Under the pieces are notes generated by a model. That model worked only from the letters and a program-made list of their open reading frames with translations. It did no database searches and was not told the origin of the DNA. Below are positions 15,601-40,600 of a stretch of 64,000 nt of DNA, one piece after another. This DNA comes from Pocillopora damicornis (Eukaryota). Location: NCBI RefSeq assembly GCF_003704095.1, contig NW_020845387.1:186001-250000 (forward strand), read 5' to 3'. Made by a program: the position numbers and the translations under genes. Numbering within the stretch: the stretch's first letter is position 1; each line of letters begins with the position of its first letter.

Positions 15601-18600
15601 GAATGACTCCATTAATCTTCGATGGAATAAAACCTTGATCGCAAATTGTTAATCAGAGCAACAAGCCTGTAAACCTTACCAGCAATTTGGGGTGGATTTG
15701 CTCCTTCATAGTTAGCCTTAGAGGACTGTTTACTCATTTTCGTCCCTCCCTCAGAATTCCTTGGATACGCGAAGTGTTATGGCATGCTTACCTTTCATCA
15801 AAAGCCTTAAATCAAAATAACTCAACACCCTCCAAATTTCGTTAAAAATTCAGTAGCTTCTTATGCTCAAGTGACATAAACCTGCGGTAAATAAATCACG
15901 TTGGATTGTTTGGAAGTTTTGTTGGTTCGCGGCGTGATAACTAGAACGTACGCCCATTTTATATTATGTGGGCAAGGTAATAACAAGGGGCTATTCAATA
16001 AATGTATTCAAGGCAAGCACGTCTTTTTAATGCAATATACGTCTAGAAGTGTCCTAATTTAATCGGAAAAAAGAAACAGTGAATCCTCGATGTGTTTCCT
16101 TGGTGTAAAACAACATGATTATTCAGGTGTTTGTTTGCCAGGAGCAGTCATTTACATCCTACGACTAATTCTCTTACATTCAGCGTCAAAATGGTTGAAC
16201 AGTTCAGGACTAAACTGGAACAATGAAATACAGAGAAACTAAGGTATAATTATAGTTTTACATACTGTTATGACAAAATTGCAAAGGTCATCGCATAGGT
16301 CATTCGCTTCAAAACAAAACGCAAATGTGGCGTAAAACCCGCACTTGTTACGGTTGATAACTGACATCTCACTTAATAAGAGGAACTCAGTAATTATTCA
16401 TGATACCTTGCTGTTTATCGGCAGGACAACTGAAGTTACCGAATCTTGCCCATTCAGGCTGTGAAGCGAAGGCGTGTATAGGCGGGAACATGTCTTCTCC
16501 TTAGTAAATTGTCCATAAAGAGTCAGTGCACAGTAACTGGGAAAGATGGGTTGAAAGAGTTGATCGCAGTTTTTCCTGTTTAATCGTTTGACAAAGGTAA
16601 GGTTATGTCCCGTATTGAACGCCATGTGAATCTAAGGCTGCATGCCCGTGTTCAGGCTCTAGTAAATTTGCGCATATTTACTAATTTATTATTTGGAGTA
16701 ATGTTGACTACTGGCTCCTATTCTAGTTCAAGGTGCTAAGAAAAAGTTTGACTTTATAATTAAATGAATGTTTAGACCACAACGATCCCTGTTGGTCACT
16801 TTTCTTTTAATTCCCTCGTCAGTTTGCAGACAATTTAGCCTTAAGTGAGTCAAAATGTTTTCTATGGTATATAAAGTGTTGTGTAGTTTTGACAGAGACA
16901 ACTAAAAGGGGAGGTAGAATCGCCCCCAATCCCAACAGCTTGTATTCCTTGTATGAAGACTAACGAAAAGAACGGATAAGAAGTAAGAGAACTCATTAAT
17001 TGTTCTACATGTTTATTTTGATAAAGCCAATCTATTCGATGGCGCTAAGAAATTATTTTTTTTTTACCTGAAAACAAAATTTTATTATTTTGGTTCTTCG
17101 GCAAGAAATGAAATTTAGGATTACACTCGAGATTCCTTGTTTTGTATTATTTGTTCCAGTGTATTCAGAAACTTTTGCTCTTACCCACATCAAACCTTTC
17201 GTGTGACTTTTGAAGGTAAAATAAAATAACATGAATGATGAATAGTAAAATCCGCAGGTAGTTTTGGGAAAAGCTATAGGTATAATGACGTTGTAAATTT
17301 TTTAACAAAATAATAACATCGCACCAAGATAGCATCAAGCCTCAAAACAATCTTGTTATATTTTCAGAATAAGAGAAACATTTTCGTCCCATATTTCAGG
17401 AGGACACTCACTAGCTTTAAACACATCCTTCGGTCATAGTTTTAAGCTAATCTATCTCTTGGAAACTTTTGTTGCAGTTTCCATGTACCACTACAATCCA
17501 GACGAACGCATTGGTTGAATGTAAAAGTGGGTACAGAGAGTGGAACGGTAAAGATAATAAGACGAAACCTCGGTTTATTTTTGGCACGAATAAGCTCCCC
17601 TACGTTTCCACGACAAATTACATTATATCCCATGCCACCATGTATTGAATTACTACTATTGTGCGAAGGATCAGCGCCAAGAAATCATGCACAGTGAACG
17701 CTTTATCATATCAATCGCTTGTAATTTATTTTCGCACTGAACTAGATCCCGCGTGTTAATTCTTTTGTTTACAACATATCATGATTTACCAAGTTAATTT
17801 CTATTTCTATTTTAATTTTGAAACACAGCTTTAACCAACAGTGGTTAACTGTAAGGTCTTCTTGTTCCGTAGAAGATAGCGGGGTAAAACTGAGCCACAA
17901 ATCGATTCTATTTTTAGAGTTTGTAAAGCTGGCGTTCTGAATAATTAAGATTGTGTCCACGGATCATGTGCTGTACGAGAGCACCTCACATGATAAAAGC
18001 TGGCGGCAGGTGTAGTATATATTGTTTCTATAAACATCAAACTCGAGATATTTTGCATACAATCCAGTTTCTACGCACTGAAGTACTTCGAGAATTTGCT
18101 ATCTAAATACCTTGTTTTGTATTTGAGCGCATTCCCTATTAAAGAAATGCCGCCGAACATAACCACCTACTACTGTCATCTTTACCTCTTTTATCGCTTG
18201 AAAATAAATAAAGATCTCGTTTCTTCATGACAAAGAGTAGAAAAGCTTTGCTGCATGGCTTTGACGGCAAATGGAAAGTTTATTCCATCACCTATTAAGC
18301 GCGTGTTACCGTGGTTCATTCTTAACTTCAGGTTGTTACGTGCTTACCAAAAACACGATTAGCATCACAAAGTTTAGTTTCCATTCGCAATACCGTTTCG
18401 TTTCATCCGTCCGAGACAAAGAACCACAGCTCCGACTATGACAACATTCATTGTCGATTAATATGCTAAGGAAAATGTTGCTGGTGACCAAAATCCTCAG
18501 AATCAACAACAAAACAGTGACCACAGCTACTTCTAGAACTTACCAGCAACTTGCTCCTCGGAGAGCCGTTTTTCCGGTTTCTGTGGACATAAAAATCAAA

Positions 18601-18791
18601 CAAAAAGAACTTACGCACTAGTAGGACGGCTCCAAAACATAGATAAATTATTAGAACTCCCCCAGCTTTCGTCTGAAATAATTCTGTGGTTTTTACACGT
18701 CGTAAAACAAACAGGTTTTTCCCTGAAAGCCAGATAAAGAAATGATGAGTGGAGAGGTTACCTCTATCGATTTATTCGGCATAGCGTTCAT
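12686..18791 (-). CDS. Calmodulin-like protein A (4 EF-hands, about 156-159 aa) with alternative N-terminal exons
   Basis: Common exons 14438-14295, 13689-13447 and 12711-12686 (EFRFLMTK*, strong polypyrimidine acceptor). N-terminus 1: 18791/18782-18762 plus 18580-18544 (MPNKSIE|[12 protein letters not shown]). N-terminus 2: 15737-15680 ([19 protein letters not shown]). EF loops: [48 protein letters not shown]. Confidence 0.9.
13115..13375. repeat. Dispersed non-autonomous repeat (CCAAT-rich family), copy 1
   Basis: gattggtc...aaccaatcagat...cgcgttttcccgcgct aligns with the reverse complement of 50070-50290. Confidence 0.65.
13800..14059 (-). mobile_element. tRNA-derived SINE in an intron of calmodulin-like A
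   Basis: Minus strand: A-box TGGCCGAATGG (14051-14041), B-box GGTTCGAG (14009-14002), then about 200 bp of non-tRNA body ending in a short TATACGTAT tail. Confidence 0.7.
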
Positions 18792-19587
18792 TGGCGTAAG
18801 GAGTTTAACTCGACGAACGAACCATTCTAAAGGAATATTGTTTACTATTGTTTTTGCTAGCTCATGTTCTCGCTCAGTTGATAGGGGTCTAGGACTGACT
18901 AATGTTTCGAAAAGATAAATAATTTATAGTTTCCATTTGTGTTCATAACTTCGTAATATCAAATGAAAGCCATGCGTCATTAATTTAAATTAATACACGA
19001 ACTCAGCCACGTTGACAGATAAACGAGTGGAGGGAAAAAACGCACAAAATTTTTAATAATCTGATCTGACGTACGATTTTTTCAAAGAATTATCGTGACG
19101 AGCCAACATCGATATTTCTACTTGCAACCTGTATTGAAAAACCTGGCTCATATCAAACTGGTTTTCAGTAAGTCAGTGTAATTAAAAAGTAAGAGCTTAA
19201 TGGCCAGCGCCGACAAAAACACCATGATATCGAATGAATTCAGAAGTGAACGAAAATTAACCAACAGGTGGGTTTTTAGAGAGGAATATTTAAATTTTAT
19301 TACGTTCACCTTGAAAAAAAAAAAAGATTATTTTAGTTCAAGGTATAAGTTTTTCCATTGCTGCATTTTGCTTGTAAGAGAAAGAATTCGATACAAGGAT
19401 GAAGGGTTCAAGGTTTATTATGACAGGAAGTACTAATTCTCACTAATTGTATTATTATGTTATTACAAGTCATTACATCGAATCAAGATACAACCTGAAG
19501 AGAGCGAGGTCTGGAACTATTATGAGCCAGCAATAAATGATTACAACATGACTGATACATCACGTACCTAGTAAACTTTGTCTGAAA

Positions 19588-22473
19588 ATGACGGCGAAGG
19601 AACTTAAAACTTTGGTCACTTTTCTGATGTTTCATCTCTGTTTGTCCCTTAATGACTCAATTCATGGAACTCCTAATATAATTATCTTTCTGACTGAAAG
19701 TCTCTCTATGAAAGATCTGGGTTTTTACTACGATAACTCCCAAGAAACTCCAAACATAGACAGCTTGATCGAGGAAGGAGTTGTGTTTTCGCGCTTTTAC
19801 GCCCAGTCGTCAAGGATTGCCTCTCTTTCATCTCTGTTAACAGGATTGTTGCCACCTAGAACTGGAATCATCAAGAGTAAGTTTCTGAATTTCAAAGAAA
19901 TTCCGTCTTTAGCTTCTTCAGGAGGCTTACAGCACGCAGAAATAACTCTAGCGGAAGATTTGAAAGCTAAGGGCTACACAACAAGTTTTGTGGGTTTATG
20001 GGGATTAGGAATTGGTAGAAATGCTGAATATTTACCTCTCAATCACGGATTCGACTCCTGGTACGGCGTGGCGTCTGCAAACAAAGAACCTTGCATGGAA
20101 AGTTACAAGACAACATCTGATTCACTGTACACATGGCAGTCTGTCTGTGCGTTTTTCAGTCCTTTACTGTACATTCTTCCATTTGTTAGTTTTGTCGGTT
20201 GGTACAAAGGCCTTGGTAACATAGTCACTGTTATCATAGTTATTATCGCTTTTATCATATACAGCAGTATTCTTCATGATGTTATACACTTCACAATGGA
20301 TTTTATCCAAGTTAAAAGCTGTGTTCTGTATAGAAACAGCAATATCATAGAACAGCCATACACTGTCGAAAACTTGACCTTACGGTTTACAAGGAATGCT
20401 GTGCAATTTTTGGAGTCTTCATCAATTTCTTCCAAACCTTTTCTTCTATTTTTCAGTTTCATGAACCTTAATCAACCAGAATTTGCTTCAAGGCTATTTT
20501 CTAACTCATCACAAAGTACTTATTCTGATGCCCTTAAGGAGCTTGACTGGAGTGTTGGAAGGATATTGAGAGTGTTAAAGAAGCAGGATCTAGAAAATAA
20601 TACATTAGTTCTATTTTTATCAGCCACTGGTCATCATGTTCATAAAGCTTCTGAAAGTTGTAGTGTGGTTGAAAATGGTGAAAGAGAAGCCTCATGTCTG
20701 CAAGGTGAGACTGATCATTCCTTTATTTTAACACCATTTTATTACAGAAACTATTTGCTCTGATTTTATGAGTAGATAGCTAATTGTATGAATGGGTAAC
20801 ATGAAGTGAATCCTGTATTTTGATTGACTCCTGGACTCGTTGCCTCTATTAATCCTTTGAAAGAAAAAGGTGTTCATGGTACCAGTACATACTTCACAGC
20901 TTTAGTGAGGATATTTTTTTTAAGAGGAAACAATTCTCCAGCAATGTGACAACACATTTTGATATAGAAATACCAATAGCAAAAGCACAAGATAATTTTT
21001 TAGATACTGGGAATAGATATTATTCAATTGTAGTTTCTTATGAGTGTACTGAGTTCTAGGTTGACTTCACATCCAAAATTTTTTTTCTCGAAACTTGCTA
21101 TTTTGTTGTGAAATTTTCCATAATCAAGGGTTTTTTTTTTTTCTTATTTTGCTTTTTTTCATGCAAGACTATTGTGTACCTGTTATCAGTGACTGTTTTT
21201 ATGTTGAGGAAGAAAAGAAATGATTACTGGTATATTCTCATTAAGGTGGCAGTGTAAATGGAATTTGGGAACAAACCATTCGTGTTCCAGCAGTGATGAG
21301 ATGGAAAGGAAAACTTAAAGAAAAACAAATAATCAAGACTCCTGTGACAATAATGGATGTTGTTCCAACAGTGCTGGAGTTGCTCAATGAAAGTACTGAA
21401 GCTGTGTATTTAGATGGCAAAAGTTTGTTACCAGTCTTACTTAACTCATCAGCAGAATTTAAGCATAAGTACATTTTCCATTACCTGGATGTCACCAAGC
21501 CAGCTGCAATAACATCAGGATCTTATAAAGTTTTGTATACAGGAGTTAAAGGTAATTATGGAGTCTGAATCATCCCACATTAATTAATCTGTGCTTACTT
21601 GCTATCCTCCTCTATCTAACTTGTAGTTTAAGAGTCATTTAGCAGTTTCTATTCTGACCAGTATTTCCCTCTACATGTCCTCTTAATGACTTATGAAGGT
21701 ATGCCCTTTCCTCATGGGTCTGCATTTTTGTTGACTGCATTTTATGCTGTTTGGTTGCATGTAATAAGTTTACCTGCTTAGAGCTTTTCTATTCTGTTGT
21801 CTCCCCTGTGGATGAAGTCTTGTGTTTCTTAACCTTACCTATGTAGTGGTGTGGGTCGATGAACTTTTTATGGTTCCAAATGGAAAGATGTTGTATTTCA
21901 TTGGCATGGTCTGAAGCTATTATTTTTAGTGTTTTCAAACTGAATGTCTCTGTCATCAAAGAATGATAAAACAAGAAAGTGGCATTCAACTTGGCAAACC
22001 TTAAACTTAATCTGGTTCCAAACGAAAAGATGTTTAATTTCATTGGCATGGTCTGCAACTATGATAAAACATGAAAGAGGTGAACAACTTGGCAAACCTT
22101 AAAACTCACAAGTGCAGCAGTGTAAAGGTTGGGATTTACAATTAAAGTAAGAGAGACAAATGATTGAATGCTCACTTGTCTTCCCCTTTCTTTCTTCCAC
22201 CTAGATAGCAGAAACTTACAGTTTCATGAACCTCCACTACTGTTCAATGTTGAGGTTGACCCAGAGGAGACTTCACCTTTACCAAATGTTGAACACAGAG
22301 AACTGTTGGCAAACTTTTCAGATGCTTTGGCTGAGCACATGAAAACAAGAAAAAACAAATGGCATTCACAACTGGACAGCAGAATCATTCCTTTCTTGTT
22401 TCCTTGTGCAAATTTTCCACGCTGTTTCCAAGCTTCAGATGAAAACAATGACTTCTCAGAGTTATTTAATTAA
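19588..22473 (+). CDS. Steryl-sulfatase/arylsulfatase-fold membrane protein, predicted catalytically inactive (563 aa)
   Basis: Exons 19588-20704, 21246-21551, 22205-22473 (GT-AG, phase 1/1). Signal peptide, PNIIIFL, TPNIDSL, EITLAEDLKAKGYTT, PLNHGFD, an STS-type hydrophobic hairpin, ELDWSVGRIL, IRVP, MDVVPT, LDGKSL, HEPPLLFN..DPEE. No CxPxR signature. Confidence 0.88.
21872..22103 (+). repeat. Imperfect tandem duplication in sulfatase intron 2
   Basis: ggttccaaa..aaagatgtt..atttcattggcatggtctg and atgataaaaca..caacttggcaaaccttaaa each occur twice. Confidence 0.75.
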
Positions 22474-23398
22474 CTTATTTTTTCATAACTGTTGGTGAAA
22501 GGTTAGTCTTTTACTGACTTGCACCAAGTTTTATCTACTTTGAATATTAATGGAGGAAGCCCACGAGCAGTGTGCATTGAGAATCATGAGGAGGGGAAAC
22601 AAAAGTATGACCAGTTACTCCTCTTCCTTCCCATTGCCCCCTTTGTAATGGTAATAATAGGTTCTTGCAACCCTGCAGTCAGGTATTGGTAAGGGGTAAC
22701 TAGGAAGGGGTGAGGGTAAATTATATACTTGACAAGTAGCCTTCAGCCATTCTCAATGTTGTCTAACATTCCAGTTACACATTACTGCTGTGGAAGCTTA
22801 CCAGACCTCTACTTCTGATGGTCAGCATGTCAACTATTATACCTCTGTGCCTTTCAGAATATATGAATGAAAAAACTTCTGACTCTCAGTATGTTTTGAA
22901 GGAGCCCTAAAACTTCAACTAACAAACTGTTCAAAAATTTTACTTATTGCAAGCATTACACTTTGAATTGAACAAAGACATCACTAATAAACTAGTTTTT
23001 TTCAACAAACAAGACTATTATTTGCATGTGATTAAGTATCATTAAAAGGAAGTGATGTAACAAAGTACATTGTAACAGAAATTGAACCTCATTACTTAAT
23101 AGTTGCTAAATTATCAATATATGCTTAATTCTTTGACTGGCAATAAATCAAAAGTCCCCATTCTTGACCTTAATTTCATAATTTGATAACAATTATTAAT
23201 AAAGAAAATAAGAATGAATCATTCATATGCTGCATCATTATGAGACAGTTTACAATTTAATATTCTTTTATACTGGTGTCATGGAAAGAGCTCTTAAAAA
23301 TATCTGCTCACTATAAATATTTCTGATAATTGATTTAATTATTTATCCTCATTTTCAGTAAATAAGGTTACCCGAAAATTAGTAAAATGCAACTTCAG

Positions 23399-23560
23399 TA
23401 ACTCTTTAACTCCCATGATCTGATTATTTATTCTCCCTTCTAGCTGCAACTCGATTACTTGTAAAAGAGTTCTGAGAATTAGGTGTTAGATTAAGACAAC
23501 AACTTCTACCTCAACGATGTATGGATATTATAGGAAAAAGTACATGCCTGTTATTTCTAG
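23399..23560 (+). mobile_element. Decayed copy of the piggyBac-like MITE at 29073-29271
   Basis: taactctttaactccca..ctgatt..attctcc..tctagct..acaacttcta is co-linear with 29070-29180. Confidence 0.6.
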
Positions 23561-23734
23561 TATGTACCACACAGGTGAAGAATGCTTTTTGTGCACTTAT
23601 GGGCTTGTTCAGAAGTGATTAGCCAGCAGTACTCAACTCCATGCAGCTAAAGAGATAAAATTGTTCTTCAAAAATTTCATTATTTTCCATTTATTGGTAT
23701 ATTGACAGGAATAAACTAATTTTTTGGTTTCTGT

Positions 23735-23858
23735 GTGGTATATACTAAAACAATTATTCACCTCAGTGTAGGTGAAAGTGGTGGACATTTACCTTGCCAC
23801 GAAGCAGCTAAGTAATGTTCACCACTATTCACTTCCACTTCTCTGAGTAGTAGTTAAT
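23735..23858. repeat. Imperfect palindromic repeat
   Basis: gtggtggacattta...taatgttcaccac arms around a short loop, flanked by aattattca / tagttaatt. Confidence 0.45.
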
Positions 23859-24195
23859 TGTTTATTCTGTTTTATTATACCCCTTAGAGTTATGAGTCTG
23901 AATCATTTTTGTAGCACTTTGAAATTCAGGCGAATTTTTCTGGAAGGCAAGTACATCTAGATTGAACTACTAACTACTTAAGATTTCAACTGGTCTTACA
24001 AAATTTTGACATGCCATAGCATTTGTAGGTAAAACACCATTCTGGAAAAATGAAATATGATCTTTACAGTTCTTGCATTGACACAATTCCAGCAACATGT
24101 TCAACAATTAATGGTCACATGACAAACTGTTTCAAAAGCCTTTTTCGTTTTGTATTTGAGGACAAAATCAATGTTCATCTCACTCAAATGTGGCT

Positions 24196-27100
24196 CTAGA
24201 GTACATCTTTCACATCCTTACTTGATCCATACTCCAACTGTCCAGAAGACTTTGCAAAAGCCTCCTCATTATTTAAGGAGCCATCCACATCTGGAGAAGA
24301 AGACATCACTGCATAAAGATTGCTTTGTCTCTCCAAAACATACAACCATCTGTCAAATAAAAATAACAAAATAGAGAATTAAATCATAAATTAAATATAA
24401 TAATTGTTCACCTATTTTAACTGTAGCACAGAAACATTTTAGTCAACTTAATGAAGATCTTTTCCAACTTAGAATAATTAATAATTTTGAGTACATTTCA
24501 CAGACAGGAATCAATCACAATTGAACTTAAAATCATCTCAGAAGTTAAAAGGTGTTACAAAAATAATTTTTGAGCCACGAAAAACAACTGAGTGTCTGAA
24601 TAAAGCTACAATCTTGAACAAAAACAAAGTGCATCAATTAGTTTCAATGTTTCAAAATCAATCATTTGCAGAGGAAAAATGGCAGATGTCTGTTAAAACA
24701 GCAAAGTTGTGTACATTTGATACAGTGACACCTAATGACTTACATAAGCAAGAGTATGGGAATAACAGTCATTCCAGACATCAAAAAATAACAAAATCCT
24801 GGTAGCCAGTCCACTGTGGCACTGTAAATACTGTTAAAAATTAATGATGCAAGGAGTGTCTCCAACACTTCAAGAGATGCAACGAGAGCAAATGTTGTAC
24901 CTAAATCAAAGAAAAACAACAATTTACAATCAGGGGTTTGATAAATTATGAAATAACCATTAAAGTAGAGACAGTCAAGAAATTTGTTGGGTGTTCAAGT
25001 ATTCAACCTAAAGTTTTTCATGTGGTCTGGTATTATGGGTGATGTTAACCCTCACAGGTACTGTAGTTGATAACAATGAGGAAGTTTAGAAATCATGAGT
25101 GGAGGTAATCACAAACAGACAATTTTCAGGACACTTGCACCACTAAAAGTAGTCAGAGCTTCAATACAACCACATACAACACAACAAAGAATTTTATTTC
25201 ATTTTTCCTTCTTCCCCAGTCCTTGTTACAACTTATACTCATTGTACTACAATATGCTAGCAGTACTGCTGGTGAAACTGAGTTTATGAACTTAAAGAAA
25301 ATAACAGTTTATCGAGAATACCTATGTTATAAGCATAGTAGATTCAAATAACCATGGACTAGTTCTTACCTTGCTCTGAAGAGTCAACTTGTTTTGATAT
25401 CATTGACCTCATGCATGGTGGTGTGACGCCAGCCCCAATGGCAATCAATCCACCTACAAGGAAATCCAAATAAACCTTCACACCCTAACATCAGTCTGTA
25501 TACTCTCTGTTATATCCTCTGAACATTTCTTATGGTGCTTTAAAAGATAATAAGCCAATAATAAAGAGCTTCTTTACTTTGTGAGCATTTCTTTTATTCT
25601 CATGACCTTAATGTNNNNNNNNNNNNNNNNNNNNNNNNNNNNNNNNNNNNNNNNNNNNNNNNNNNNNNNNNNNNNNNNNNNNNNNNNNNNNNNNNNNNNN
25701 NNNNNNNNNNNNNNNNNNNNNNNNNNNNNNNNNNNNNNNNNNNNNNNNNNNNNNNNNNNNNNNNNNNNNNNNNNNNNNNNNNNNNNNNNNNNNNNNNNNN
25801 NNNNNNNNNNNNNNNNNNNNNNNNNNNNNNAGATAAATAATCACATATCCTATGATACTATTGGGAGTAATTAGATTTTTATCACTCTCAAGGGTTAAAA
25901 TGTTAATACATCATTTACTTCAAGGAGTTTGACCATAACACACTAAGTTCAAAAAGTTTTACTAACCAACAAACATCATCCATCTGCTGGAGGCAAATCC
26001 AAGGAATATATATTGTCCAATGGATATTAGAGAACCAACAATAGCAATAGTAAGATCTGACCATTTGAGAATCTTTGTCATCAGTGGTATCCCTAACATA
26101 ACACCAAGACCTTTGATAAACAAAACCTCAGCAAAGAAGTAACCAACCAGTTCAGAAGTGAAGTTTCTTGGACTGTGCTTGCTGTACAGGACTGAGATAT
26201 CATTGAAACCACCAAAATCTGAAAGAAGGAGCTGAAGTTAGGGAAATTTTATACAATGTGTAAGCTAACGTTAACAGGAAGAGATGCCAGGTGATTAAAA
26301 GGAGCTTATTGTAAAAATTTATGTCTGTTTTCAAGGATAAATGGCATCCTTGTTAATGTATATTTATTTTAATGTTTGTTTCCCTCCCACCCCAATGAGC
26401 TTTGCTATTTTGTGGGTAGGGATTGTTAGATATCTATTTTAATTGCTAAAATATATAAATTTTGTTTTTGTTTGTTTGTTTATCCGGTGACCTTGTTCTT
26501 TTGGTTTCCATGACTTGAGCCAACAGCTCTCCCTTTTAAGGACACAAAGGAACCACAGCTTATCCAGAGGTTTTAAATCTTACCATGATTAAACTGAGAG
26601 GCTAGACTACCCATAAATGGAGAAATGAAATACATTCTGAGAGGAACGAACATGATGGATTCATGACCATGCGCAAACCCAGGACCATAATTCAGTGCTC
26701 TAAGCATTCCAGTTTCATACCCATTTAGCTAACAAATCATGAAAAATAAAAAAAAACCTCAGCAACTCACTTATTAGTACAAAAACCAATATTCCAAACA
26801 TGATAACCAGCAAATTTAGTCTTCGGTGTTGAGGTCGCTCCTTAGTTAAGACATGGAATGATGTCTTGATGTGATTGTGTATCGCTACCAAAGCCCAGTT
26901 TTCTTGCTGATTTGAATCAGGAAAGTAAGACTCAGGAAGAATAAGACCGACGTATGCTATTATCAGAACATTCAGGCCTAAGCACAGACCAAAGGCCGCC
27001 ATGTAGCCACTATGATATACAAGTACTCCACCAATAAGGTTACCAACAGTACCACCCAAGAATATCATGGATTCCAACAGGGCTACTCTCGTCGTACGCT

Positions 27101-27569
27101 GGGATTCATCAGTTATATCAGATATGTACGAGAAGACACCGAGAAGTGTTGTGGCGAATCCGCCGAAGAAACCTGAGATGCATACCCCAATTAGTAGGTA
27201 GTCGACATTCAGTGAGAAAAAACCCACATTCAGCATATAGTTGATGTAGAGCAGAACACTCCCAACAGATGGTAGAATGAGCACAGTCTTACGACCGACT
27301 TTATCTGACCAGGAACCGAGGATCAGCGAAGCTGCTATGGAAGGAAGCATCGAAGACACAGACTGATACAAAATCCATTTGGAGGTCTTCTTGTGTACAA
27401 AATTTTCCTGTGAGGTGGTGAGATTCTTGCAAGATTCGGCGTCATATTCTGCATTGCAGATCTTCTGGAAAGCCAGCTGCTGCACAAGGGGGAACGACAT
27501 AAAAACGCAGAGCATGTAAAGAAAAAGCACTGGCTCCACAGTGATATTACGGAAAATTGCGATCGCCAT
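24196..27569 (-). CDS. SLC46-family MFS transporter (PCFT/SLC46A3-like), 481 aa
   Basis: Exons 27569-26771, 26218-25967, 25453-25370, 24900-24744, 24349-24196, all phase-consistent. Motifs: TVEPVLFLY, GSWSDKVGRK (MFS motif A), FSYISD...RTTRVALLE, RSMISKQVDSSEQG. Confidence 0.92.
25474..25894. mobile_element. MITE-like element interrupted by the assembly gap
   Basis: Its ends match the reverse complement of 58535-58729 (e.g. aattagat...tcac.ctcaaggg followed by ttaa). Confidence 0.6.
25615..25830. other. Assembly gap (N run)
   Basis: 216 N bases in SLC46 intron 2. Confidence 1.
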
Positions 27570-27664
27570 ATTGTAGGGTACGAACAATTTTGCTTACATA
27601 TAGTATAATCTGTTCGTTACGATTGCTTATAAAAAACCTCGCAGGCTCAAACTGTTTTCTCAAA
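27570..27664. promoter_or_regulatory. 95-bp divergent spacer / putative bidirectional promoter (SLC46-like and FRG1)
   Basis: ATGs at 27569 (-) and 27665 (+); TATAAAA at 27628-27634. Confidence 0.6.
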
Positions 27665-29781
27665 ATGGCTGACAATTACAAACAAGTGAAATCTGGGCGT
27701 TTAAAACTTAAAGGATTAGACGATAGCTTACGGAAAAAGAAGCACAAGAAGAAGAAGAGGGAAAGAGAGGAAGAGGAGCCAACAGATGTTGATGCGCTCC
27801 GTCATGGAGGTTGGAGAAAAGTGGAAAACTTTCGTGAAGTTAGCGGTAACATTGCACTGCAAACTTTCCAGACAACCTATATCGAGGCACTTAACACTGG
27901 ATTGTTCACAGTTGGTGAACTGAGAGATGATGGTGAAAATTCGCCGGCACCTGTTGAAGTGTTTACAGCTGTTCCACTTTCCGAGAAAAATATTGCCTTA
28001 AAATCGGGTTATGGTAAGAAATGATTTAACTTTTTAATTTTGTAAGCTTACCAGTTACGACATTACAGCTTTGGGGTACTTGGCTCATAGGTACTTGTTC
28101 TTGTTTAAATGATACGATTTCAGCTCACAATGCCTTCAGCCAACTTTTACTTTTTTTAAGCTCTACTTGAGACCTTCAACTGTTTATTTTTCTATCTTTT
28201 TAAACCAATCTGAGATTTTTATTTATTTGTCTTTTGTTGTCTCACGTTAAAAATATTACTACATAACATATTTATACATGTACATTTATGCATGTAACGG
28301 TAGCAAATCACATGTGAAATTTAATTTTGGTTGAAATTTACAGGTGGTGAGTATCTGAGCTGGCAACAACGTTTTGCTCTTGATAGATTTTCAATACCTT
28401 TGTCATGGCAATAATTAATTATTTAACAATGTTTATGTTAATTAAATAATTACTTTCTTCATCATTTCATAACATTCATTGTTACAAACATGCCTACTTG
28501 ATTTTTATGTGCTTATGTGTACTTCTTTATTAAGCATTCAGTGTTGTTTGCTTGTAGACAGGCCTTCTTTTTAGTATTTAAAGGGTTATATCACCCATGA
28601 TCCACACTAGTTAAAAGTGTAAAATAGGTTATGGCCATTCAAATGGATAGATCAGGAAAAAACTTATCCTTTGTCTTGTGATGTTGTCACTTCTGATATG
28701 TATTAAAATAAACTCTTAAAGATACCTAGACAAGTGACGGAAGAGAAGAAGTATTTAAATCTAGAAAGTGATAAGGTTAAGAATGAGATATTCTCAGGTT
28801 TCACCATCACTGACAATCTTTTGTCATACAGGAAAATATATGTCTGTTGATATGATGGGAAATGTCACTGGAAGATCAGATGCAATTGGTCCTCAGGAAC
28901 AGTTTGAGTGTGTCTTTGAAGAAGACAAAGTTGCTTTTGAAACATATAATGGCTGCTATTTGTCTGTCAATGAAGATGGGCAACTCTCTGCAAGCAAAAA
29001 AACTGTTGGAGAGAAGGAGACATTCCATGTTCGGACCAGTGTTCCAAAAGTGTAAGTGTTACTATTTCATAACCCTTTAACTCCCAAGAGCTGATTCTTG
29101 ATTCTCCCCTCTAGCTACAACATATTTCCTTGTAAATTAGTTACAAGAATTTTAGATGAAGATTAACAACTTCTAGCTGATAAGATTGAGTATTCTCATT
29201 ACCTGTTGCTGGATAATGTATAGATATCATTGGAAGAAGTTACATACTAATCACTTGTAGGAGTAAAAGGGTTAAGATATGAAAAATAAAAAAATAAATA
29301 CAGTTTAGTCAGTTTAGTTAATATCCATAATTCGTCACAATCGGGGCAAAGGGGCAAGTGCTTCTGAGGTTTGATGTAATGCTTACCCCTCAGTTTGACC
29401 TCATCATGTTTAGACACTACATGCCTAAGTAAGTTTTGCCTTACATTGCTACTGTATGCCATATCAAAGTTTGATGAGAGGCTGAAAAAAAGATTGTCAG
29501 TAACTTGAAATGAGTGACTGTGGATTGATGTTAAAATAATTTGGTATTGCTTCTTCTTTTTCCATAGTAAAGTGTGCACCAGCAGTTTACCTGAGGGAGA
29601 AAAAGATCTGCGGAATCATGAAATTAGTTTTGTCAAGAAATTCCAAAGTTTTCAAGACAGGAATTTGCGTCTGAGTGAGGAGGAGAATAGCAGATTGAAA
29701 AAAGCAAAAACTGATGGTAAACTTCATGAAGAAATGTTAAACAGGAGAGAAAAGATGAAAGCAGATAGGTATTGTAAATAA
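27665..29781 (+). CDS. FRG1: Protein FRG1 homolog, 260 aa
   Basis: Exons 27665-28013, 28832-29051, 29568-29781. Motifs: YKQVKSGRLKLKG, Lys-rich NLS, IALKSGYGKY, GRSDAIGPQEQFE, FVKKFQSFQD, GKLHEEMLNRREKMKADRYCK*. Confidence 0.96.
29073..29271. mobile_element. piggyBac-like MITE in FRG1 intron 2
   Basis: TIRs CCCTTTAACTCC / GGAGTAAAAGGG (1 mismatch), flanked by ATAA and TTAA; non-coding. Confidence 0.75.
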
Positions 29782-31697: not shown

Positions 31698-34600
31698 TCA
31701 TACCCTTGTAAAACTATCGTTAACAAAGTCTGTTATTTTCTGCACCAGTAATTCACAAATTTCTAATGCGTCTTGTGCTTGATCGCTCGTAAAAGCTTCC
31801 GCAGGGATCGTGTCGCCACGATGAAAATGAGGATATCTAGTTTGCTCGTAATAATTCTTGAGCTTGGCAGCCAGGAGGGCAATATCAGCGGGTGATCCAT
31901 CTAACTCAGTAATCTCATAGGCAAGATTCAGTACATCGTGTGTTTCTAGTTGTTTCTCAGATATGCCGCAAGCTGCATACAAGGCGCCTTTGAAAACTTT
32001 CTCTGTTGCTTGTTGACATAAAAAGCAAACCAACGCAGGGAATTTTGGTTGTTCACTTTCTAGATGTTTTGCTGCGTTTAGGTCTTCTTTGGCTTGTTTC
32101 ATCCACCGCTTGGCCTCGTTCTTCTGAGGGTTGGTGGACCTCTTCGAATAAGGAGTTCCTTGATGATTTTGTCGTTTAAACGTGTCATAAGTTTGCCTTT
32201 CTTGCCGAGCTCGCTGGTTCCACTGGTTGAAGAAATCATGAAAGCTGCTGGCTCCATCTTGTGTTCCCTTTTCCTTAGCATCTCGCAGATTGTCTCTCCA
32301 ATTAGAAGGAAATAGCTTTTCCATTCTCTCTATTTCGTTAAGCAGGAATTGCATCACATCATTAGCAATGTCAGAGCCTATATTTTTGTCCGGGTGCCAT
32401 CGGAGGAACAAACGCTTAATGACTTTCCTTCTTTCATTTTCAGGTAACTTCCAAGCCTCCCACAGGGTATCCTTGATTTCTTGTTTCGCCTTTTCAAGAC
32501 GTTCATTTCGACTCGCTGCCCGGCGCTCTGATTCCTTGGGGTCTCCAGTAAAAATCGATACTTCACGAGAATCCGATAGTACGGGTTCTGCATTTGGAAT
32601 TTCAGCGTTTGATCGATCAAACTTGTAAAGATCAAGTACGCTGACTTCCACGAGGCGTGGCTCTCCAATATCAACGCGATATTTGGCTTTGAAGTCAAAT
32701 CTGCTGGTTTCCATGGATCTCTTACGATTTGGCACTTTCCTCACCACCTTCGCGTACACGTAGAGAGGCTCAGAGTCATCAATTTGACCATCTTCGGTTC
32801 TGCGTTCCTTCTCGTAGCCAACTATTTCACCTTGCCGAAAAAAGTATTCGATGTCTTGCCTGAGCAGGTAGTGATACATCACCGGAATCTCAGATCCAAG
32901 AACAGGCTCCGTAGTGCGCGCCTCGCTTCCCATGAGATCTTGCGCTACACCGCATCTGTCGAGTGAGGGTAGGATCTCCTCTGGTACCCTACATGCAAGC
33001 ATTGCTTGAAGGTAGATCTCCTTCTCTATTTGATTATGAATCAAACGATTTACCTGAAAGCAAAGTTGGATGTGGAGGGGATTTTCGTCTGTGCCATGCC
33101 TGATGAACAATTCCCACTCACCATTCTGTTCTTCTAAGAAACAGTCTTGGGTTTCTTGGCTATGTTGTAATGGTTTACCAGATTCCAAGTGAATCAAATG
33201 AGTGTCAAGTGATGCCATGCAAGTTACACTGAGCGAGCTACAAAGGACTTGTACCTGGTCTTTGACATCTTGAGGCAAATTCGGTGTCTGTCTTTGATGA
33301 CGGATTACACGTAGAATTCCATTCACCAACTTCGGAGAGAGCAAAACGTTCCGGTATCTGTTTACAAATGGGCAGGGATCTGATCCAATAGTGCTGTCTG
33401 CTATGCATCGCTTATCTCTACAGGTAGGATGTATCTCTTCCCGCAGTAAATTCTGAATCGTCTTTGCCCTCAGACGCAAAGGTAGAAGACTGAGAAGGTA
33501 AGAGAGGCGGTCTGCGGTAAGTTCTCCTTCCCGACTGATGTCCACAAAGTCACCGGCAAAGTCTCGTGCACGACGTTCAAAGCTGGGACAATCGTGAAAG
33601 ATCAGCTCATTTGATGGCTTGAGAAAACCTTCTTTGCTAGGTAAAAAGAGTTGGTTCAGTGAAAAAAGACATCTTGTCGCAGCCTCTTCGCTTTTTTCCT
33701 TCACTAACAGTGACAGGGTGGTGAAAAATCCATGTGTAGCTTCTCTAGCCACCTTTTTCTCGTTGGGCTCCATATGCTTATCCTCACACACCTCCTTTAG
33801 TCTCCCAAGGACATCAGCAAACTGTGATGGTGTTGGTTTCTCATGTGCTCCAAGCCTCTTAAGTACATGCTCAAAATGGCCGTACTCTCGCGGTACTTTA
33901 TAAAAGTAAGGTGGCATCTCTGTTGTCGTCTCAAACGCTAATTGATTGCCTTCCACAAAAACGCGGCCTTCTTCAACGGGAATGCAAGGTGTTTTCCTGA
34001 GAATGTTTCCAATAGCTAGACAAGACTTCGTGCACTTGTCTGACAAAGTGTTACCGGAGCAATTACATTCACCTTTCAAGAAAGTGAACGCCTCGTATAT
34101 GACATCGTGAAGAAGCTCCCTTTGGTCTTTTGGGGTGTCTTTATGGACATTTCCACTGTGTGCTTTGGTTAGAAGAGCGATGTGATCGATAACTTTGTCC
34201 AGTGGAGGGAGAAGTGCAACTCCGAGGTCTTCCAAAACTTGTTTCTCGGCGGTATTTGGAGTGGCCCAGGCTGGAAGGAGAGGAGTGGAGGTCCACGAAA
34301 TTTTCTGTTGTTCGCATGGTAAAGCTCCGTGGAACTCAGTAAAAGGAGGAATGTCTTCCTTACTTTTACACGCAAATTGAGGCTGCAGGTTTGTCAGTTG
34401 TTTAGATGCAGTTTCTGTTGCGACAAACTTTATAGTGGATACGACATGTAGAAAGCTTGGATCATGCAGGTCATCCTGTTGAAACAGACAAGTAACCAAT
34501 GTTTTAGACACATCGTTCAACTGAGTATCTTGGGACCTGGTCACTGCATCAGACGCTAAGGATTCTGCAAACTGGATAAACTGTTGCTGGGAAACACGGT

Positions 34601-37600
34601 TCTTAAGTCCAACTTGACGAAGGAATGGGAGCCAGCTTGGAAGGCTGTAATCTCCTGGTGGAAAATCACCAGGAGAGAGCAATTCTGTAAAGACTGGATT
34701 CTCAGGATCATAAAAATGGCTGACAGGGACTAGTGTGTCGCTTTTGTCTGGAAAAATACGTGCCTCACACAGGGCATCGAGTAAAATGCTCTTCTCACTG
34801 GAACTCTTTACGGTGAATAGGAGAGTATCTTTGATGTAGAGCAGCACTTCCTGAAGGCCTCTCTCCGACATCGCGTCAAGGTTTGGCAATATGTATTTGA
34901 CGAATACGTCTACTTGTGACAGCTGGCTGATATCGAGAGCCTTGTATAAAGGTTCTATTTCTTGAATCACCTCCAATAGTACACAACTTTCTTTTTCAAT
35001 GCGCGCTTCGATGTCAGCCAGGGATACACACTGAGGCAGATCGACAACGTACGAGAAGGCATATGAATCGAGACTAACAAATTTCCCATTCAGGGTTTTG
35101 TATAGCGGCAGTTTTCTCAGTAGTGATTGGTTACTATAGACGGTAGTGACGTCTTCCTGCAAAAATCGTAGAAGTGTAACGATTTCGCCTTGACCGAGTT
35201 CGCATTTGAAGTCATCACCTTTAGATAGGTAGTGTATAACGCTGATAACATCTTGTCTCGAGTATGGCTTCGCCAGATGTGGGGATGCAATGAGTGAAGC
35301 CTCATCCTTGTCGACTTTTGGAAGAACTGAAAAATCCAGCTGAGCACTTCCAACCTTACACAGGATTCTCACCAACCTGTCTTCATTGTAAATGCGTGTA
35401 CTCAAATCCAACACAGTTTTGCTGAGGGACAGAGGAGCTAAGGTGCCATTAGAAGTAGGAATAATCGGCCAGTCTTCAAGTGGTCGAAGAGTCTCGGATG
35501 GGTCCTCTTTGTCTTCGAAGCTTGACTGCCTTTCTTTGTATGTCAATATGATTAATTCCCACAGCGTCGTCAACCACTCAACTGATGGTGTGCAACTGTC
35601 ACTTGGTTCCCATGAGACATGTTTGTCGCCTGCGAACCATTTTGATGGAAGAAGTTGAATCAAATATGGAGCAATAGATATCGTGTCGAAACGTTTAAAC
35701 ACTTTGGACTTCCAAATGTCATTTCTGGTGAAGTTTGAAAACAGCGGGATGAATTCCTTATGAACAAAAAGGTCTTTCTGAGAAGACAGAAGACTGGAAA
35801 ATGGTGTGAGAAAAACTGGATTTCTTGAATCAAATTCTCTAAGTACTTCGTCTTCAGTTAGCAGAAGGGGCAACCCATCTAACCGTTGGAGGAAGTTGTC
35901 ATCTCCCATGCAATACTCGATTAATAGCTTCAATTCGCTCGCTTGTTTGAAGGTGGTACCGTTAATAGAGCAGGGGAGCACATCTGCACTATCCCTGTGC
36001 TTCGAGATGATAGCCATAACATCCTCGGGACTGACGGTTTTCACCATTGCAGCGGCTTGTTTGAAACTGGTGTACAGTCTTGGCGGCGCGTAAACTATCG
36101 GCACACCTATTTTTAGGAGTAGAGTTTCCAGTTCTGAGTTGGAAAGATTACTGAATAGTGCTTGCTGCTCTTCTCTGTCGCTGCAAGGAGGAACCCACAA
36201 GCACGGAAAAAGTGGCTTTGTGCCAAACCTTGAAAAGGTCCGAGGAGAGGTCATGGGCGGTCTGGGCGAAGGTTGGTCTCGCAAGATAGGTAATACCGGC
36301 TGATTGGAACTCGCTAGAAGTCTGTACACTGTTAAAACAATGCTTTTCCACTCTGAGTGAACACCATCTGAATCCGGAAAGATGCTGTGATACCATTTCA
36401 AACCATTTTTAGCCTCTGTGATATTGTTAAAGTACCATGGGTCTCCCTTTGAAATTCCAGGTATGCATGTTCTTGCACTTACGATGAGTTCTGCATAGGC
36501 AGGAGCTAAAACATTATTTTTGATGAAATTGTTCCACTGAGCTCTCGGTCCTTGAACTCCATCGTCTTTCCAAAGATTTCTTCTAGAATTATCCAGTATA
36601 AATTGGCCGTTAAGGTGAACTGGAAGGCCTGTCTCAACCGGCAATGGTAGGAAGCAAAACGCTCGATGAATTTTGTTATTTTGACTTGGATTTTGTAAGC
36701 TGTCGGAACGTCTTCGTCGTGGCGAGAGACTTTCATTTGTGGTCACGCAGGCTGCCACAGCTGCTCGAGGAAGAAGACCATTCTTGCTTCCTTCGGGAAT
36801 TAATTGCTTTTCACCATGCAGACGAGAACCAAGGCATCGATGAATGAGCCAATTATCTTGTCTTCCTAATGTGTCTTGAATGGTTTTGGTGTAGGTAATT
36901 CCAAACCATGGAATACAGCTGGTACTCAACTCTAAGCTCCGCTTGATTTCTACGTCGAGAGCTTGGATCTTTGGAATGTCAGTGTTTGGAATTGTTGCAG
37001 AAGCCTCGTACCGCCGAACCAACTTGTTGTTTTCAATCCTTGAAATGCTTACTCTGGTGACATTTCGAAGGAATAGTAACGTTTCTCGGATTTCGCTTTC
37101 AAAAATGGTAAGCAGTTGGTCAATTTCGGAGTTGCTAAAAGCCTTGGAGGAAATTTCTGACTGTTTAGCGGACACATCGTTTCTAATTGGCAGGCGGAAC
37201 ATCGTAGACTCTTTCAAATGAAAGAACTCCTCTAAATAACAGGGTCTCACGTCAGCAAAATGTTCCCAAAATTCGTCATCAAGGGGATCAAATCGACGTC
37301 CGGGAAACTCCAGTGTTGCATCAGGCGCATATCGGGCGTGTGGATCGAGAACGCACAATGTTTCGGCGTTTGTAATGAAGCTTGGGCAATCGGTCACGTG
37401 GTATACTGCATTAAAACCGATACCATACTTTCCTGTCTTCTCAGGGCTGCCAGTCTTGCTTCCTATACCAAGCTTTTGTATCCCCTCAAAGTCTTTTTCT
37501 GTGAAGGGACAGTCATTGTAAATACAAAGTGCTGGTCCCTGGAGGTCTTTCCATTGTTCCGACAAAACACGAGTTGTACCATGTTGACGCGGATCATGAA

Positions 37601-40600
37601 TAAAATGAACTTCTGTGGCCCCTGCATCTTCTGCATTTTGAATAATCTCTTTAAGTATTCCAACATCACACGGATAAGCTTCCAGTACTCTTTTTAGTCG
37701 ATCTGTTAGGCGTTCACTCTGACCAAAGGGCTTTCCTATACGATGAGAATACTTGTCCAGCTTTTGTTCTCGCATAGTTTGAGCTCCTAACCTGTGGGCT
37801 AACATTGCGGAAATATCACTGTGAATACATTTCGTTTGCCCACAGGAGTCCAGCCAAGGTGTGTCGTTGATTGTTAGTTCTCCTACAGGCGTGAGCACCA
37901 AATCCACATCTGGTAAGGGGAGCTGACCGCAATAAGAACTCAGAGCATCTTCATCCATCGAGGCAATATCTTCCAAGAAAGATTTTACAGTCCTAAACTC
38001 TTGAATCGTGAGAGGTTCGCCATCTTTTCTCTCAGCAAGAACAAATAATGCATCGACCATGTCCTCACCGGAAAACGATTCTCTGACTCCAAGTGCTCTA
38101 AAGAGATCTTTGAATTTTATGGTGTAGTCATCGGGAAGGCAATAAAGAAAAGGATCCCCATGACTTTTCCATGAAAAGGCAACTTGATCAGAAGTTACAA
38201 ACTTGCCTTCCACAAATATCCATGGCTTTCCATGGAGAAGGTTTTGAATAACTTGCTTGTCTGAGGTGTTTAATCTCTCTTGTAGGAACTGGTAAACGGC
38301 AGTAGAAACCCTCCTGGCACATTCTCTGCTGGCCGCATCATGCGCAACGAGACCTTGTACAGCGGAGTGGAGTTGCAGAAGGACATCATTGACGGTCAGA
38401 CGCTGATCACCAAGCCTTAACAGCCTAGAGACATCTTTGCTCACACGGTCACATCCGGTCTCTGAAGATTCGTCTAAGATTGGGAGTACCGCTCCTATTA
38501 AATATGTGGAGTCATCACGTCGTAGCTCTCTGGCTGAAAACAATTTTTTTGCACTTCCCTCTGATCCCTTCCACGGCAGGTGATACCCTGTTGGTCTATC
38601 CATAGCAGGAAGAAAACAAATTTCTGACAATTGTTTCCTTTGTTGAGTTCCTGGTGGAGATAGCTTGCTTGAGTTGTCATTCAAATATTTGATTAAGTTC
38701 CTCGACATCGGCAGAGCTTTTTCATAATTAACAGTGGCTAACGTTGCAATGAACGTGGCTCTCTCGCAGATTCTTTCCCACGGTAATAAAGCCTCTACCA
38801 TCCCAAGGTTTCTCAAGGCAACGAGTCGTTCTGCTCTTAGGAAACCTGATCCAGTTGGGAAGATGTGCTCCTCTTCAAGAAATAAGCTGCTAGCAGCTCC
38901 AGTAGGGTCAATCAGTTCACCGGGCCGAGACCTATGGCAACCATCTGGTGATGTTGGGATACATCGATATCCTCGCAAGATTTTCTCGTACTTGTACGAT
39001 CCTCTAAGGTATTCATCCATAACATGACATGTTATTGGATCCTTCAGACTGTTCGGCAACCTGTCAATTGCCGGAAAAAAGATGTCGCAAACAAATTTGT
39101 CCATGGTAACAGTTTGTGCAGCAATTTCTTGTGTGGCACTTCTTTCAAAGCCGTTCGTAGCAAATTTTGGCAGTTGAATTACGTTGAAGCCGCATGTGCG
39201 CATTATTGGAGAACTCTCCGGTAACCGTGAGACATCCTCTTCTAAAAAGACGCAATCTTTGAACGATACCCATTGTGACTGACTTCTCAAAAGAGTTCCT
39301 GTACTATTTGCTATATTCTGATAAACAGTACAGGCAAACTTTATCCAAGTCTTGGAAGGAGCTTTTTCTGGGTCCGGCCAAAGGATGTCAAATGGAAATT
39401 CCACTATCTTTCCCTGTCTCTGTAGACTAACAATTTCTACCAGGAGTTGAACGTAAGCCTTTGAAGCGGCGTCTTCAAGGAGACTTTGGTTCCAAAGTAC
39501 TTCAATCGGTTTTCTTGACGGTGGACTCTCTTTCGTATCTTCCCATAAACTACGGCGATTTGTCGTCACAGCAAAGTAGCCGTTTACGTGAACTGGAAAA
39601 CCTGTTTCTACTCCCAGAGGTAGACCAAGGAATACTTCTCCCACTGTTTTCTTAGGGCTCCATCGCTTAGCTTCGTCGTTGTCTGATAGTAGGGCAGCGA
39701 CTTCAGCTTTAGGCAACAAGCCATTTAGCTTTCCATCTTCTGTGTTGGCCATCTCGAGCGATTTTCTTTCACCGTAACATGACGTGATCAACCAAACTTC
39801 AGTGTTTCGTTGGTTTCTTGAGGACTGTAATGAACTATTTGGGAAGGCTTGAAATTTCATAAACACTACTCTAGAGGAGTCGACAAGGTGTTGGTGTTGG
39901 TGCCGTTCAAAGACCCAGCTGCCATTAAGATCGCTTTCGCGGATTCCTTGGTTATTGTTTTTCTCTGACGTCAGCCTGTCTGCTGGGATGCCTGTTGACG
40001 GCAACGTCAACAATATGTCCTTTTCCACCTCAAACACTGCATTGGGTAAGGATGGGTTCTGATCGTACGCTATTTGAAAGAAACTTATCTTGCAAACACT
40101 CTGTAGAAAGAGCAACATCTTTGATGCGTTTTCCTGAAATGCTGAAATCAATTGGGTGAACTGCTGCTCGTTATAGAACTTGTTGCAAATCTCGCTGTCA
40201 CTGGCCTGTCTCATGGTTCTTAAAGGAAACCTGAATAGGGTTCCGTCATAAAAAAATGACCGATCATTCTTATCAATTGTGCATCCAAAGACTCCTTGAT
40301 AAGGCTTAAACTGATCAGAGAACGCACTCAGTGCCACTGCATTGTTCCTAAGATTCAAACGAATGCCGGGACGAGATTTGTCCTTGATGAGGTCTCCTAA
40401 ATGAGTTGTTTCTGGGTCAAAAAAGGCAATGAACTCACGGCTGATGAAACTAGGAAGGTCAGTTATATTGTAAGCAGTACAAAATCCAATTCCGAAACGG
40501 CCTAGCTTGTCTTTATTCCCTATCTTGGTAGCTCCTGCCAGTTTGTTTATATTCTCGAAGTCTTTATCTGTAAAGAGGGCGTCGTTGTAAATCCACAGGG

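Follow-up and report, generated by a model that had tools for sequence, protein, structure and literature searches.

The results of this analysis suggest that a gene on the forward strand of a 64,000-nucleotide stretch of the genome of the coral Pocillopora damicornis (contig NW_020845387.1, positions 186,001 to 250,000; the whole stretch is referred to as the window) encodes a catalytically dead pseudoenzyme of the steryl-sulfatase (STS) type, which is expressed, is under purifying selection, and is the coral's single member of an inactive clade found in every cnidarian class sampled, with stony corals, an anemone, an octocoral, and a scyphozoan represented. We consider this reading likely, with a probability of about 0.8. 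The gene is located at 19588-22473 in the coordinates of the window, which are used throughout. It combines homology to an enzyme family and loss of the catalytic residues with purifying selection and expression, the combination by which a pseudoenzyme is recognized, and it shows none of the marks of a pseudogene, namely a broken reading frame, a ratio of nonsynonymous to synonymous substitution (dN/dS, or omega) near 1, and lack of transcription.

Catalytic positions and the sulfatase scaffold

In type I sulfatases, the formylglycine-generating enzyme (FGE) acts on a C-x-P-x-R motif, four acidic or amide ligands hold Ca2+, and Lys, His, and Arg residues hold the sulfate. When the window protein was compared with human STS, by whose numbering the catalytic positions are given, the HMMER alignment and the MAFFT alignments agreed, and all ten catalytic positions were found to be substituted: the protein lacks the Cys targeted by FGE/SUMF1, every Lys, His, and Arg residue that binds sulfate, and three, if not all four, of the Ca2+ ligands. 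The formylglycine motif of type I sulfatases (C/S-x-P/A-x-R) is absent, and the alignments to STS place R-I-A-S-L at this site, as an initial annotation of the window had proposed. The formylglycine loop contains neither a Cys nor an S-x-P-x-R motif, and no Cys is present between residues 19 and 168 of the window protein, whose only Cys residues are at positions 18, 169, 187, 245, 358, 370, 542, and 548. At the divalent-metal ligands, which are Asp, Asp, Asp, and Asn/Gln in active enzymes, the window protein has E37, S38, A346, and T347, and the hexacoral orthologues have D, N, A/T, and T/S/H/G, respectively. Of the residues for sulfate binding and proton transfer, K134, H136, H290, K368, and R79 are replaced by L137, G139, N295, S375/V376, and L80. 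The alignments thus agree with the initial annotation in reading G-L-W-G for G-K-W-H, Asn in the H-x-H region, and S-A-T-G for S-D-N-G. Its reading of the metal-binding Asp-Asp pair as T-E has to be corrected, as the pair aligns to E37-S38 and is preceded by T36. Its reading of the sulfate-binding G-K as G-S stands in that the Lys is absent and the sequence GGSVNG occupies the site, but the exact counterpart of K368 is ambiguous in the alignment there.

The replacements differ among cnidarian lineages. At the Asp-Asp pair, D-N is found in hexacoral orthologues, and N-H/Q, E-N, or, in the clade member P0080, D-D in other lineages. The position of C75 is occupied by Arg in stony corals, by Ser or Gly in the anemone and in anemone-like members, by Pro in octocorals, and by Ser in a medusozoan-like group, while the position of K134 is occupied by Leu, Val, Tyr, His, or Asn across the clade.

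The scaffold on which these substitutions occurred is that of an STS-type sulfatase. Homology searches were performed exon by exon, and the exons were joined only for alignments, dN/dS estimates, and trees. In the Pfam search, exon 1 matched Sulfatase (PF00884, E 7.5e-31), exon 2 matched the end of Sulfatase and SGSH_C, and exon 3 matched Sulfatase_C (PF14707, E 3.6e-11); PF00884 followed by a C-terminal sulfatase domain is the arrangement of the S1 fold of type I sulfatases. The best matches among solved structures by sequence search of PDB were human steryl-sulfatase 8eg3 (E 4e-47) and 1p49 (E 3e-46), with ARSA and GALNS far behind, and the alignment to STS was continuous across the STS-specific membrane hairpin. 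The two antiparallel hydrophobic helices inserted in the catalytic domain, which characterize the steryl-sulfatase-type subgroup, are present as hydrophobic segments at residues 186-204 and 212-230, with Kyte-Doolittle means of 1.97 and 2.64, and a hydrophobic core resembling that of a signal peptide is present at the N-terminus. Furthermore, P0004, a full-length orthologue of Oculina patagonica with 75% identity, was modelled with AlphaFold from an alignment of 39 sequences; the model had a pLDDT of 81.6 and a pTM of 0.84, contained long helices at residues 181-207 and 211-244, and had 1p49 as its best structural match in Foldseek (E 2.9e-37, TM 0.71). The sulfatase scaffold and membrane hairpin recognized in the initial annotation are thus seen in the Pfam and PDB searches, in the hydropathy, and in the orthologue model. 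Along with the STS fold and the hairpin, the conserved N-glycan sequon N262-L-T and the conserved residues C169 and C245 are kept, and both the NLT sequon and the Cys pair are invariant.

Because the formylglycine motif, the metal ligands, and the sulfate ligands are all replaced, sulfatase activity is very unlikely, and we infer that the protein would be unable to be activated, to hold metal, or to hydrolyze or hold sulfate esters. The retention of the signal-like N-terminus, the NLT sequon, C169/C245, and the hairpin argues that the protein probably still folds in the lumen of the endoplasmic reticulum (ER) and is anchored like STS.

Selection, transcription, and age of the family

In a word-based protein search, approximately 27 proteins were identified as close relatives, and every one of them came from a coral or an anemone (Stylophora, Oculina, Montipora, Porites, Actinostola), the closest named orthologue being that of Stylophora pistillata with 89% identity; vertebrate STS followed with approximately 34% identity. 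The catalytic set is absent in all of these close relatives. Orthologous DNA was represented by six loci in ENA assemblies of coral and anthozoan genomes (L013-L018), in which the genes were rebuilt by a script guided by tblastn anchors, by GT/AG sites, and by the conservation of intron phase. Intact three-exon genes were obtained from 6/6 loci, with predicted proteins of 561-581 aa and intron phases identical to those in the window. The orthology of the distant anthozoan locus L015 is further supported by its surroundings, because EF-hand (calmodulin-like) genes adjoin directly upstream in both loci (L015:1933-2833, minus strand; window, about 15680-18791).

Between the window and L013, the least saturated pair, the Nei-Gojobori method gave a dN of 0.109 and a dS of 0.615, that is, an omega of 0.177 (bootstrap 0.13-0.23), and omega was 0.11-0.20 in all 15 unsaturated pairs. 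On the window's own branch, a three-taxon split of the pairwise distances gave an omega of approximately 0.22. By these estimates the gene is evidently kept by purifying selection and is not decaying. The comparison of orthologues that the initial annotation had called for did not refute its interpretation, since C-x-P-x-R is not kept in the orthologues and omega, at approximately 0.18, is not near 1.

The gene is also transcribed and spliced. Among 18 public runs covering the stretch, eleven are recorded as RNA, and RNA contigs from four runs, belonging to four different studies, were aligned over 19400-22700. Both predicted junctions, 20704>21246 and 21551>22205 (both GT..AG), were present in 4/4 RNA runs, and the contig depth over intron sequence was much lower than that over spliced sequence. 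The 563-codon, three-exon gene described in the initial annotation and the expression and junctions that it proposed to confirm are thus found in transcripts from four studies. The three coding exons amount to 1692 nt, encoding 563 aa followed by a TAA stop, with no internal stops. No differences between the RNA contigs of the four runs and the window were listed within the codons of the catalytic positions. An in-frame stop is located at 19549, upstream of the ATG, and the RNA contigs indicate that the 3' untranslated region (UTR) continues beyond 22700. When a non-coding 5' exon is added to the three coding exons, the gene comprises four exons or more. Minor joints inside exon 1 (19876>20457 and 19861>20036) had short flanks and occurred in a single run, and they were treated as unconfirmed.

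In order to place the family, an alignment of 13 clade members was used as a profile against 1.84 billion protein representatives, of which 1366 scored below 1e-30; the formylglycine motif is absent in eleven further proteins among the best profile matches. A maximum-likelihood tree of 59 proteins was calculated (LG+C20+F+G4, ultrafast bootstrap and SH-aLRT support, ARSA-like outgroup) from an alignment from which the six catalytic motif blocks had been removed, in order to keep the trait from influencing the topology. The tree contained one clade of 18 sequences (support 100/99), in which the catalytic Cys is present in 0/18. The named Cys-less cnidarian members are from Stylophora, Oculina, Montipora, Porites, Acropora, Actinostola, Dendronephthya, and Sanderia; those from outside the hexacorals are the scyphozoan Sanderia malayensis and the octocoral Dendronephthya gigantea, the latter added by a further search, and no hydrozoan member was found among the named matches of the searches. 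The sister group of this clade consists of intact echinoderm proteins (Antedon, Acanthaster; support 97/91), and both nest in a subfamily (100/99) whose other members include intact proteins of hemichordates, nemerteans, and molluscs and which stands apart from the vertebrate STS/ARSD-H group.

The tree indicates that the loss of the Cys is old, ancestral to the cnidarian clade rather than peculiar to this gene or species. The clade is best read as having arisen from a second, invertebrate STS-like subfamily, the echinoderm, hemichordate, nemertean, and most mollusc members of which are intact. The simplest history would be one early loss of the Cys, followed by lineage-specific erosion of the ligands and then by renewed conservation within lineages. 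When the intact crinoid protein P0081, which is 40% identical to exon 1, was compared with the coral genome, its best match was this gene (E 1e-72), as compared with 2e-30 for contig C2801, which carries intact STS-like copies with DDxG, CTPNR, GKWH, and the hairpin. The fact that the best coral match of P0081, by a wide margin, is the dead gene indicates that this gene is the coral's only member of the subfamily and not a spare recent duplicate. Within the same subfamily, independent losses of the Cys were found in Owenia fusiformis (P0088, Ser), Liolophura sinensis (P0089, Asp), and Ylistrum balloti (P0104, Asp); the sister of P0089 is an intact paralogue of the chiton in which it occurs. 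Because these three proteins are nested among intact lophotrochozoan proteins, their losses are, as judged from the tree, separate and younger.

Possible role of the protein and alternative explanations

Conservation within the protein was scored per column across ten hexacoral sequences, with a mean of 0.70. Among the most conserved windows of 15 aa, that at residues 84-98, directly after the old formylglycine motif, scored 0.90, that at 136-150, the old GKWH loop, scored 0.89, that at 255-269, containing the NLT sequon, scored 0.87, and that at 100-114 also scored 0.87. When non-overlapping windows are considered, the first, second, and fourth ranks are taken by former active-site loops, and the formylglycine-motif, loop, and GKWH windows are at the 86th-88th percentile when ranked among all windows. 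The transmembrane helices are less conserved (0.60). Because no part of the protein is more conserved than the former active-site loops, the remodelled and now uncharged cleft beside the membrane hairpin is probably still the working site. By analogy with chitinase-like lectins, in which the cleft of a dead chitinase is reused, this cleft might accommodate a partner protein or a neutral ligand of lipid or sterol-like nature in the membrane of the ER or the secretory pathway. A neutral ligand or a partner protein is favored over a sulfated ligand because the cationic sulfate ligands of the cleft are all gone. Among the roles listed in the initial annotation, that of a sulfated-ligand binder is therefore the least likely, with the Ca2+ ligands as well as the Lys, His, and Arg ligands replaced by neutral or small residues, while its broader proposal of a selected non-catalytic role is the best reading of the intact orthologues, the low omega, and the spliced transcripts. 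It is also conceivable, as a speculation, that the Arg at the old Cys position in stony corals, paired with the acidic residue 37, could replace the lost Ca2+ site structurally.

A fuller version of this scenario, in which the pseudo-sulfatase family is older than the split between Anthozoa and Medusozoa, replaced the catalytic member of the subfamily in cnidarians, and binds or senses a neutral sterol, lipid, or partner through the de-charged cleft, is tentative and somewhat more likely to fail in one of its parts than to hold as a whole.

Several points weigh against the interpretation of the protein as a conserved dead sulfatase. The inactivity is deduced from the residues, and any binding role or ligand is conjectural. 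The exon borders in L013-L018 were chosen by the script rather than from RNA, and dS is saturated for the deeper pairs. The structural model is that of the Oculina orthologue rather than of the window protein, and its conserved loop at residues 99-112 is of low confidence. In addition, some anemone-like and medusozoan-like members have Ser where the catalytic Cys used to be, and the clade member P0080 keeps most ligands except the Cys, K134, and H136, so that residual or altered chemistry may be possible in parts of the clade.

The idea that the scaffold acquired a new chemistry through a retooled active site, for example with a Ser/Thr nucleophile or as a metal-independent lipid hydrolase or transferase, draws on the same conservation of the former active-site loops, as these are the most conserved segments of the protein. 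The old nucleophile position lies amid Ser-rich motifs (QSSRIS-S) and is occupied by Ser in several lineages, and members of the alkaline-phosphatase superfamily are known to use Ser, Thr, or formylglycine as nucleophiles. However, the replacements vary by lineage at nearly every catalytic position, which is the pattern of a released constraint rather than of a single new catalytic set, and the metal site, on which all known chemistries of the superfamily are based, has been dismantled; a new enzyme is therefore improbable, although it is the best of the alternatives. Slightly less probable still is a regulatory subunit, in which the dead protein would join the active STS-like paralogues of contig C2801 in the membrane and modulate their activity or location. 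The presence of intact STS-like paralogues in the same genome would provide such a protein with partners, and many pseudoenzymes are known to regulate active paralogues, but the window protein is only approximately 30% identical to those of C2801 and belongs to a different subfamily.

The loss of all catalytic residues, together with two extra metal-site changes in the window species (D-N in hexacorals to E-S), is also what a unitary pseudogene in early decay could show, and an assembly or annotation artefact could imitate it. This explanation was rejected and is very improbable: seven genomes have an unbroken reading frame, omega is low both overall and on the window's branch, spliced poly(A) transcripts with unchanged catalytic codons occur in four studies, and the dead state is common to several cnidarian classes. 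The spliced joints also speak against genomic contamination as the source of the RNA contigs. The initial annotation had likewise judged that decay into a pseudogene fits less well. A conserved, non-catalytic STS-type protein thus remains the preferred explanation for the gene.

If this is correct, the pseudoenzymes would be extended by a new class, a dead STS-type protein conserved across the cnidarian classes sampled, and this protein would provide a natural experiment in which a sulfatase scaffold persists without formylglycine, metal, or sulfate ligands. In full-text literature searches, no description of a pseudo-sulfatase was found, nor any text joining the terms pseudoenzyme, formylglycine, and sulfatase. 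To our knowledge, sulfatases are absent from catalogues of pseudoenzymes. Public records label the members of this family as "steryl-sulfatase-like" or "arylsulfatase L/H-like", i.e., as enzymes, and inferences on steroid metabolism in corals or enrichment analyses that count the family as enzymes are probably wrong. In SulfAtlas (PMC5066984), only a few bacterial sequences were noted as having lost the Arg, and arylsulfatase B is the only sulfatase mentioned in a proteomics paper on coral larvae.

Gene features, neighboring genes, and comparison with known systems

The coordinates of the gene and of the positions discussed above are listed in Table 1.

Table 1. Features of the STS-like gene in the window, with the evidence for each
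Feature	Position	Strand	Evidence
Non-coding 5' exon, 3' end	19236..19267	+	Loose end of RNA contig X1-1 matches 19236-19265, then AG/GT
5'UTR intron, GT..AG	19268..19469	+	One RNA contig only
Coding exon 1: aa 1-372 plus 1 nt; signal-like N-terminus, sulfatase core, membrane hairpin	19588..20704	+	Open reading frame (ORF), donor GT at 20705, PF00884, RNA joint
E37-S38 at the metal-binding Asp-Asp (STS D35, D36)	19696..19701	+	Alignments to STS
R76-I-A-S-L80 at the formylglycine motif C-x-P-x-R (STS C75-T-P-S-R79)	19813..19827	+	Alignments
G-L-W-G at G-K-W-H (K134 to L137, H136 to G139)	19993..20004	+	Alignments
Two-helix membrane hairpin, aa 186-230	20143..20277	+	Hydropathy, STS alignment, helices of the orthologue model
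N295 at STS H290	20470..20472	+	Alignments
A346-T347 (SATG) at metal ligands D342 and Q/N343	20623..20628	+	Alignments
Intron 1, phase 1, GT..AG	20705..21245	+	Joint 20704/21246 in four RNA runs
Coding exon 2, including GGSVNG where the sulfate-binding GGK is expected	21246..21551	+	Pfam, gene reconstruction, RNA, alignment
Intron 2, phase 1, GT..AG	21552..22204	+	Joint 21551/22205 in four RNA runs
Coding exon 3, Sulfatase_C region, TAA stop	22205..22473	+	Pfam, gene reconstruction, RNA

An upstream ATG is present at 19200 in the 5' exon or leader, and through the splice at 19268-19469 it opens a short upstream ORF before the main start (19200-19436). Downstream of the sulfatase-like gene, an exon of an MFS transporter (26715-27587, minus strand) lies head to head with an FRG1-like/FAM32A-like ORF (27557-28024, plus strand). 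Further along, an uninterrupted ORF of 4349 aa at 31698-44747 (minus strand) contains three Sacsin (SACS) domains, with a HEPN domain at the C-terminus, and appears to be an intronless, sacsin-like giant gene.

Elsewhere in the coral genome, a cluster of STS-like copies with intact catalytic residues, numbering at least two or three, is located on both strands of C2801:311893-324385 (L002, L004, and L006), and many ARSB-like genes are also present.

Another cnidarian sulfatase homologue that is annotated as an enzyme is NVE16448, an "arylsulfatase" of Nematostella cnidocytes and a conserved target of miR-2022 (Fridrich et al. 2023, PMC10548089). When its published probe (Table S2 of the same paper) was translated by hand, the ARSB-like loop was found to read SPM-D-TPSR, with Asp at the formylglycine Cys, and NVE16448 may therefore be a second, unrelated Cys-less sulfatase homologue in cnidarians that is catalytically dead as well. 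If so, and if the fuller scenario above also holds, cnidarians would have repeatedly turned sulfatases into non-enzymes, and the current "sulfatase" annotations of the phylum would misstate function. The two proteins are alike in their annotation but differ in type, NVE16448 being ARSB-like and the window protein STS-like. No miR-2022 site with up to three mismatches was found in the window, and within 19200-25000 the best match was mismatched at 8 of 22 positions and a seed match was absent. The possibility that the window gene is the miR-2022-targeted cnidocyte arylsulfatase was rejected for the lack of a target site and because NVE16448 is ARSB-like.

Chitinase-like lectins, as is generally known, also retain an enzyme fold under selection after the loss of catalysis, with the old cleft conserved; their fold and ligand are unrelated. 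The proteins of Owenia, Liolophura, and Ylistrum mentioned above resemble the window protein in belonging to the same subfamily and in lacking the formylglycine Cys, but, in contrast to it, they nest among intact lophotrochozoan proteins and keep several other catalytic residues.

Human STS (SulfAtlas S1_3; 1P49, 8EG3) shares with the coral protein the fold, the domain order, the hairpin, and a similar length (583 versus 563 aa), as well as the conserved Cys pair at the hairpin base and an N-glycan sequon where the NLT sites align. In contrast, the coral protein is only approximately 30-33% identical to it, has all ten catalytic residues replaced, and belongs to a different subfamily from that of STS/ARSD/E/F/H. 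The nearest relatives, of the same subfamily, are the invertebrate proteins designated "steryl-sulfatase-like" or "arylsulfatase H-like" from Antedon, Acanthaster, Ptychodera, Tubulanus, Lineus, and Liolophura (P0081, P0083, P0084, P0100, P0109, and P0094, respectively), which keep DD, CxPxR, GKWH, H, DN, and K, whereas the cnidarian clade does not.

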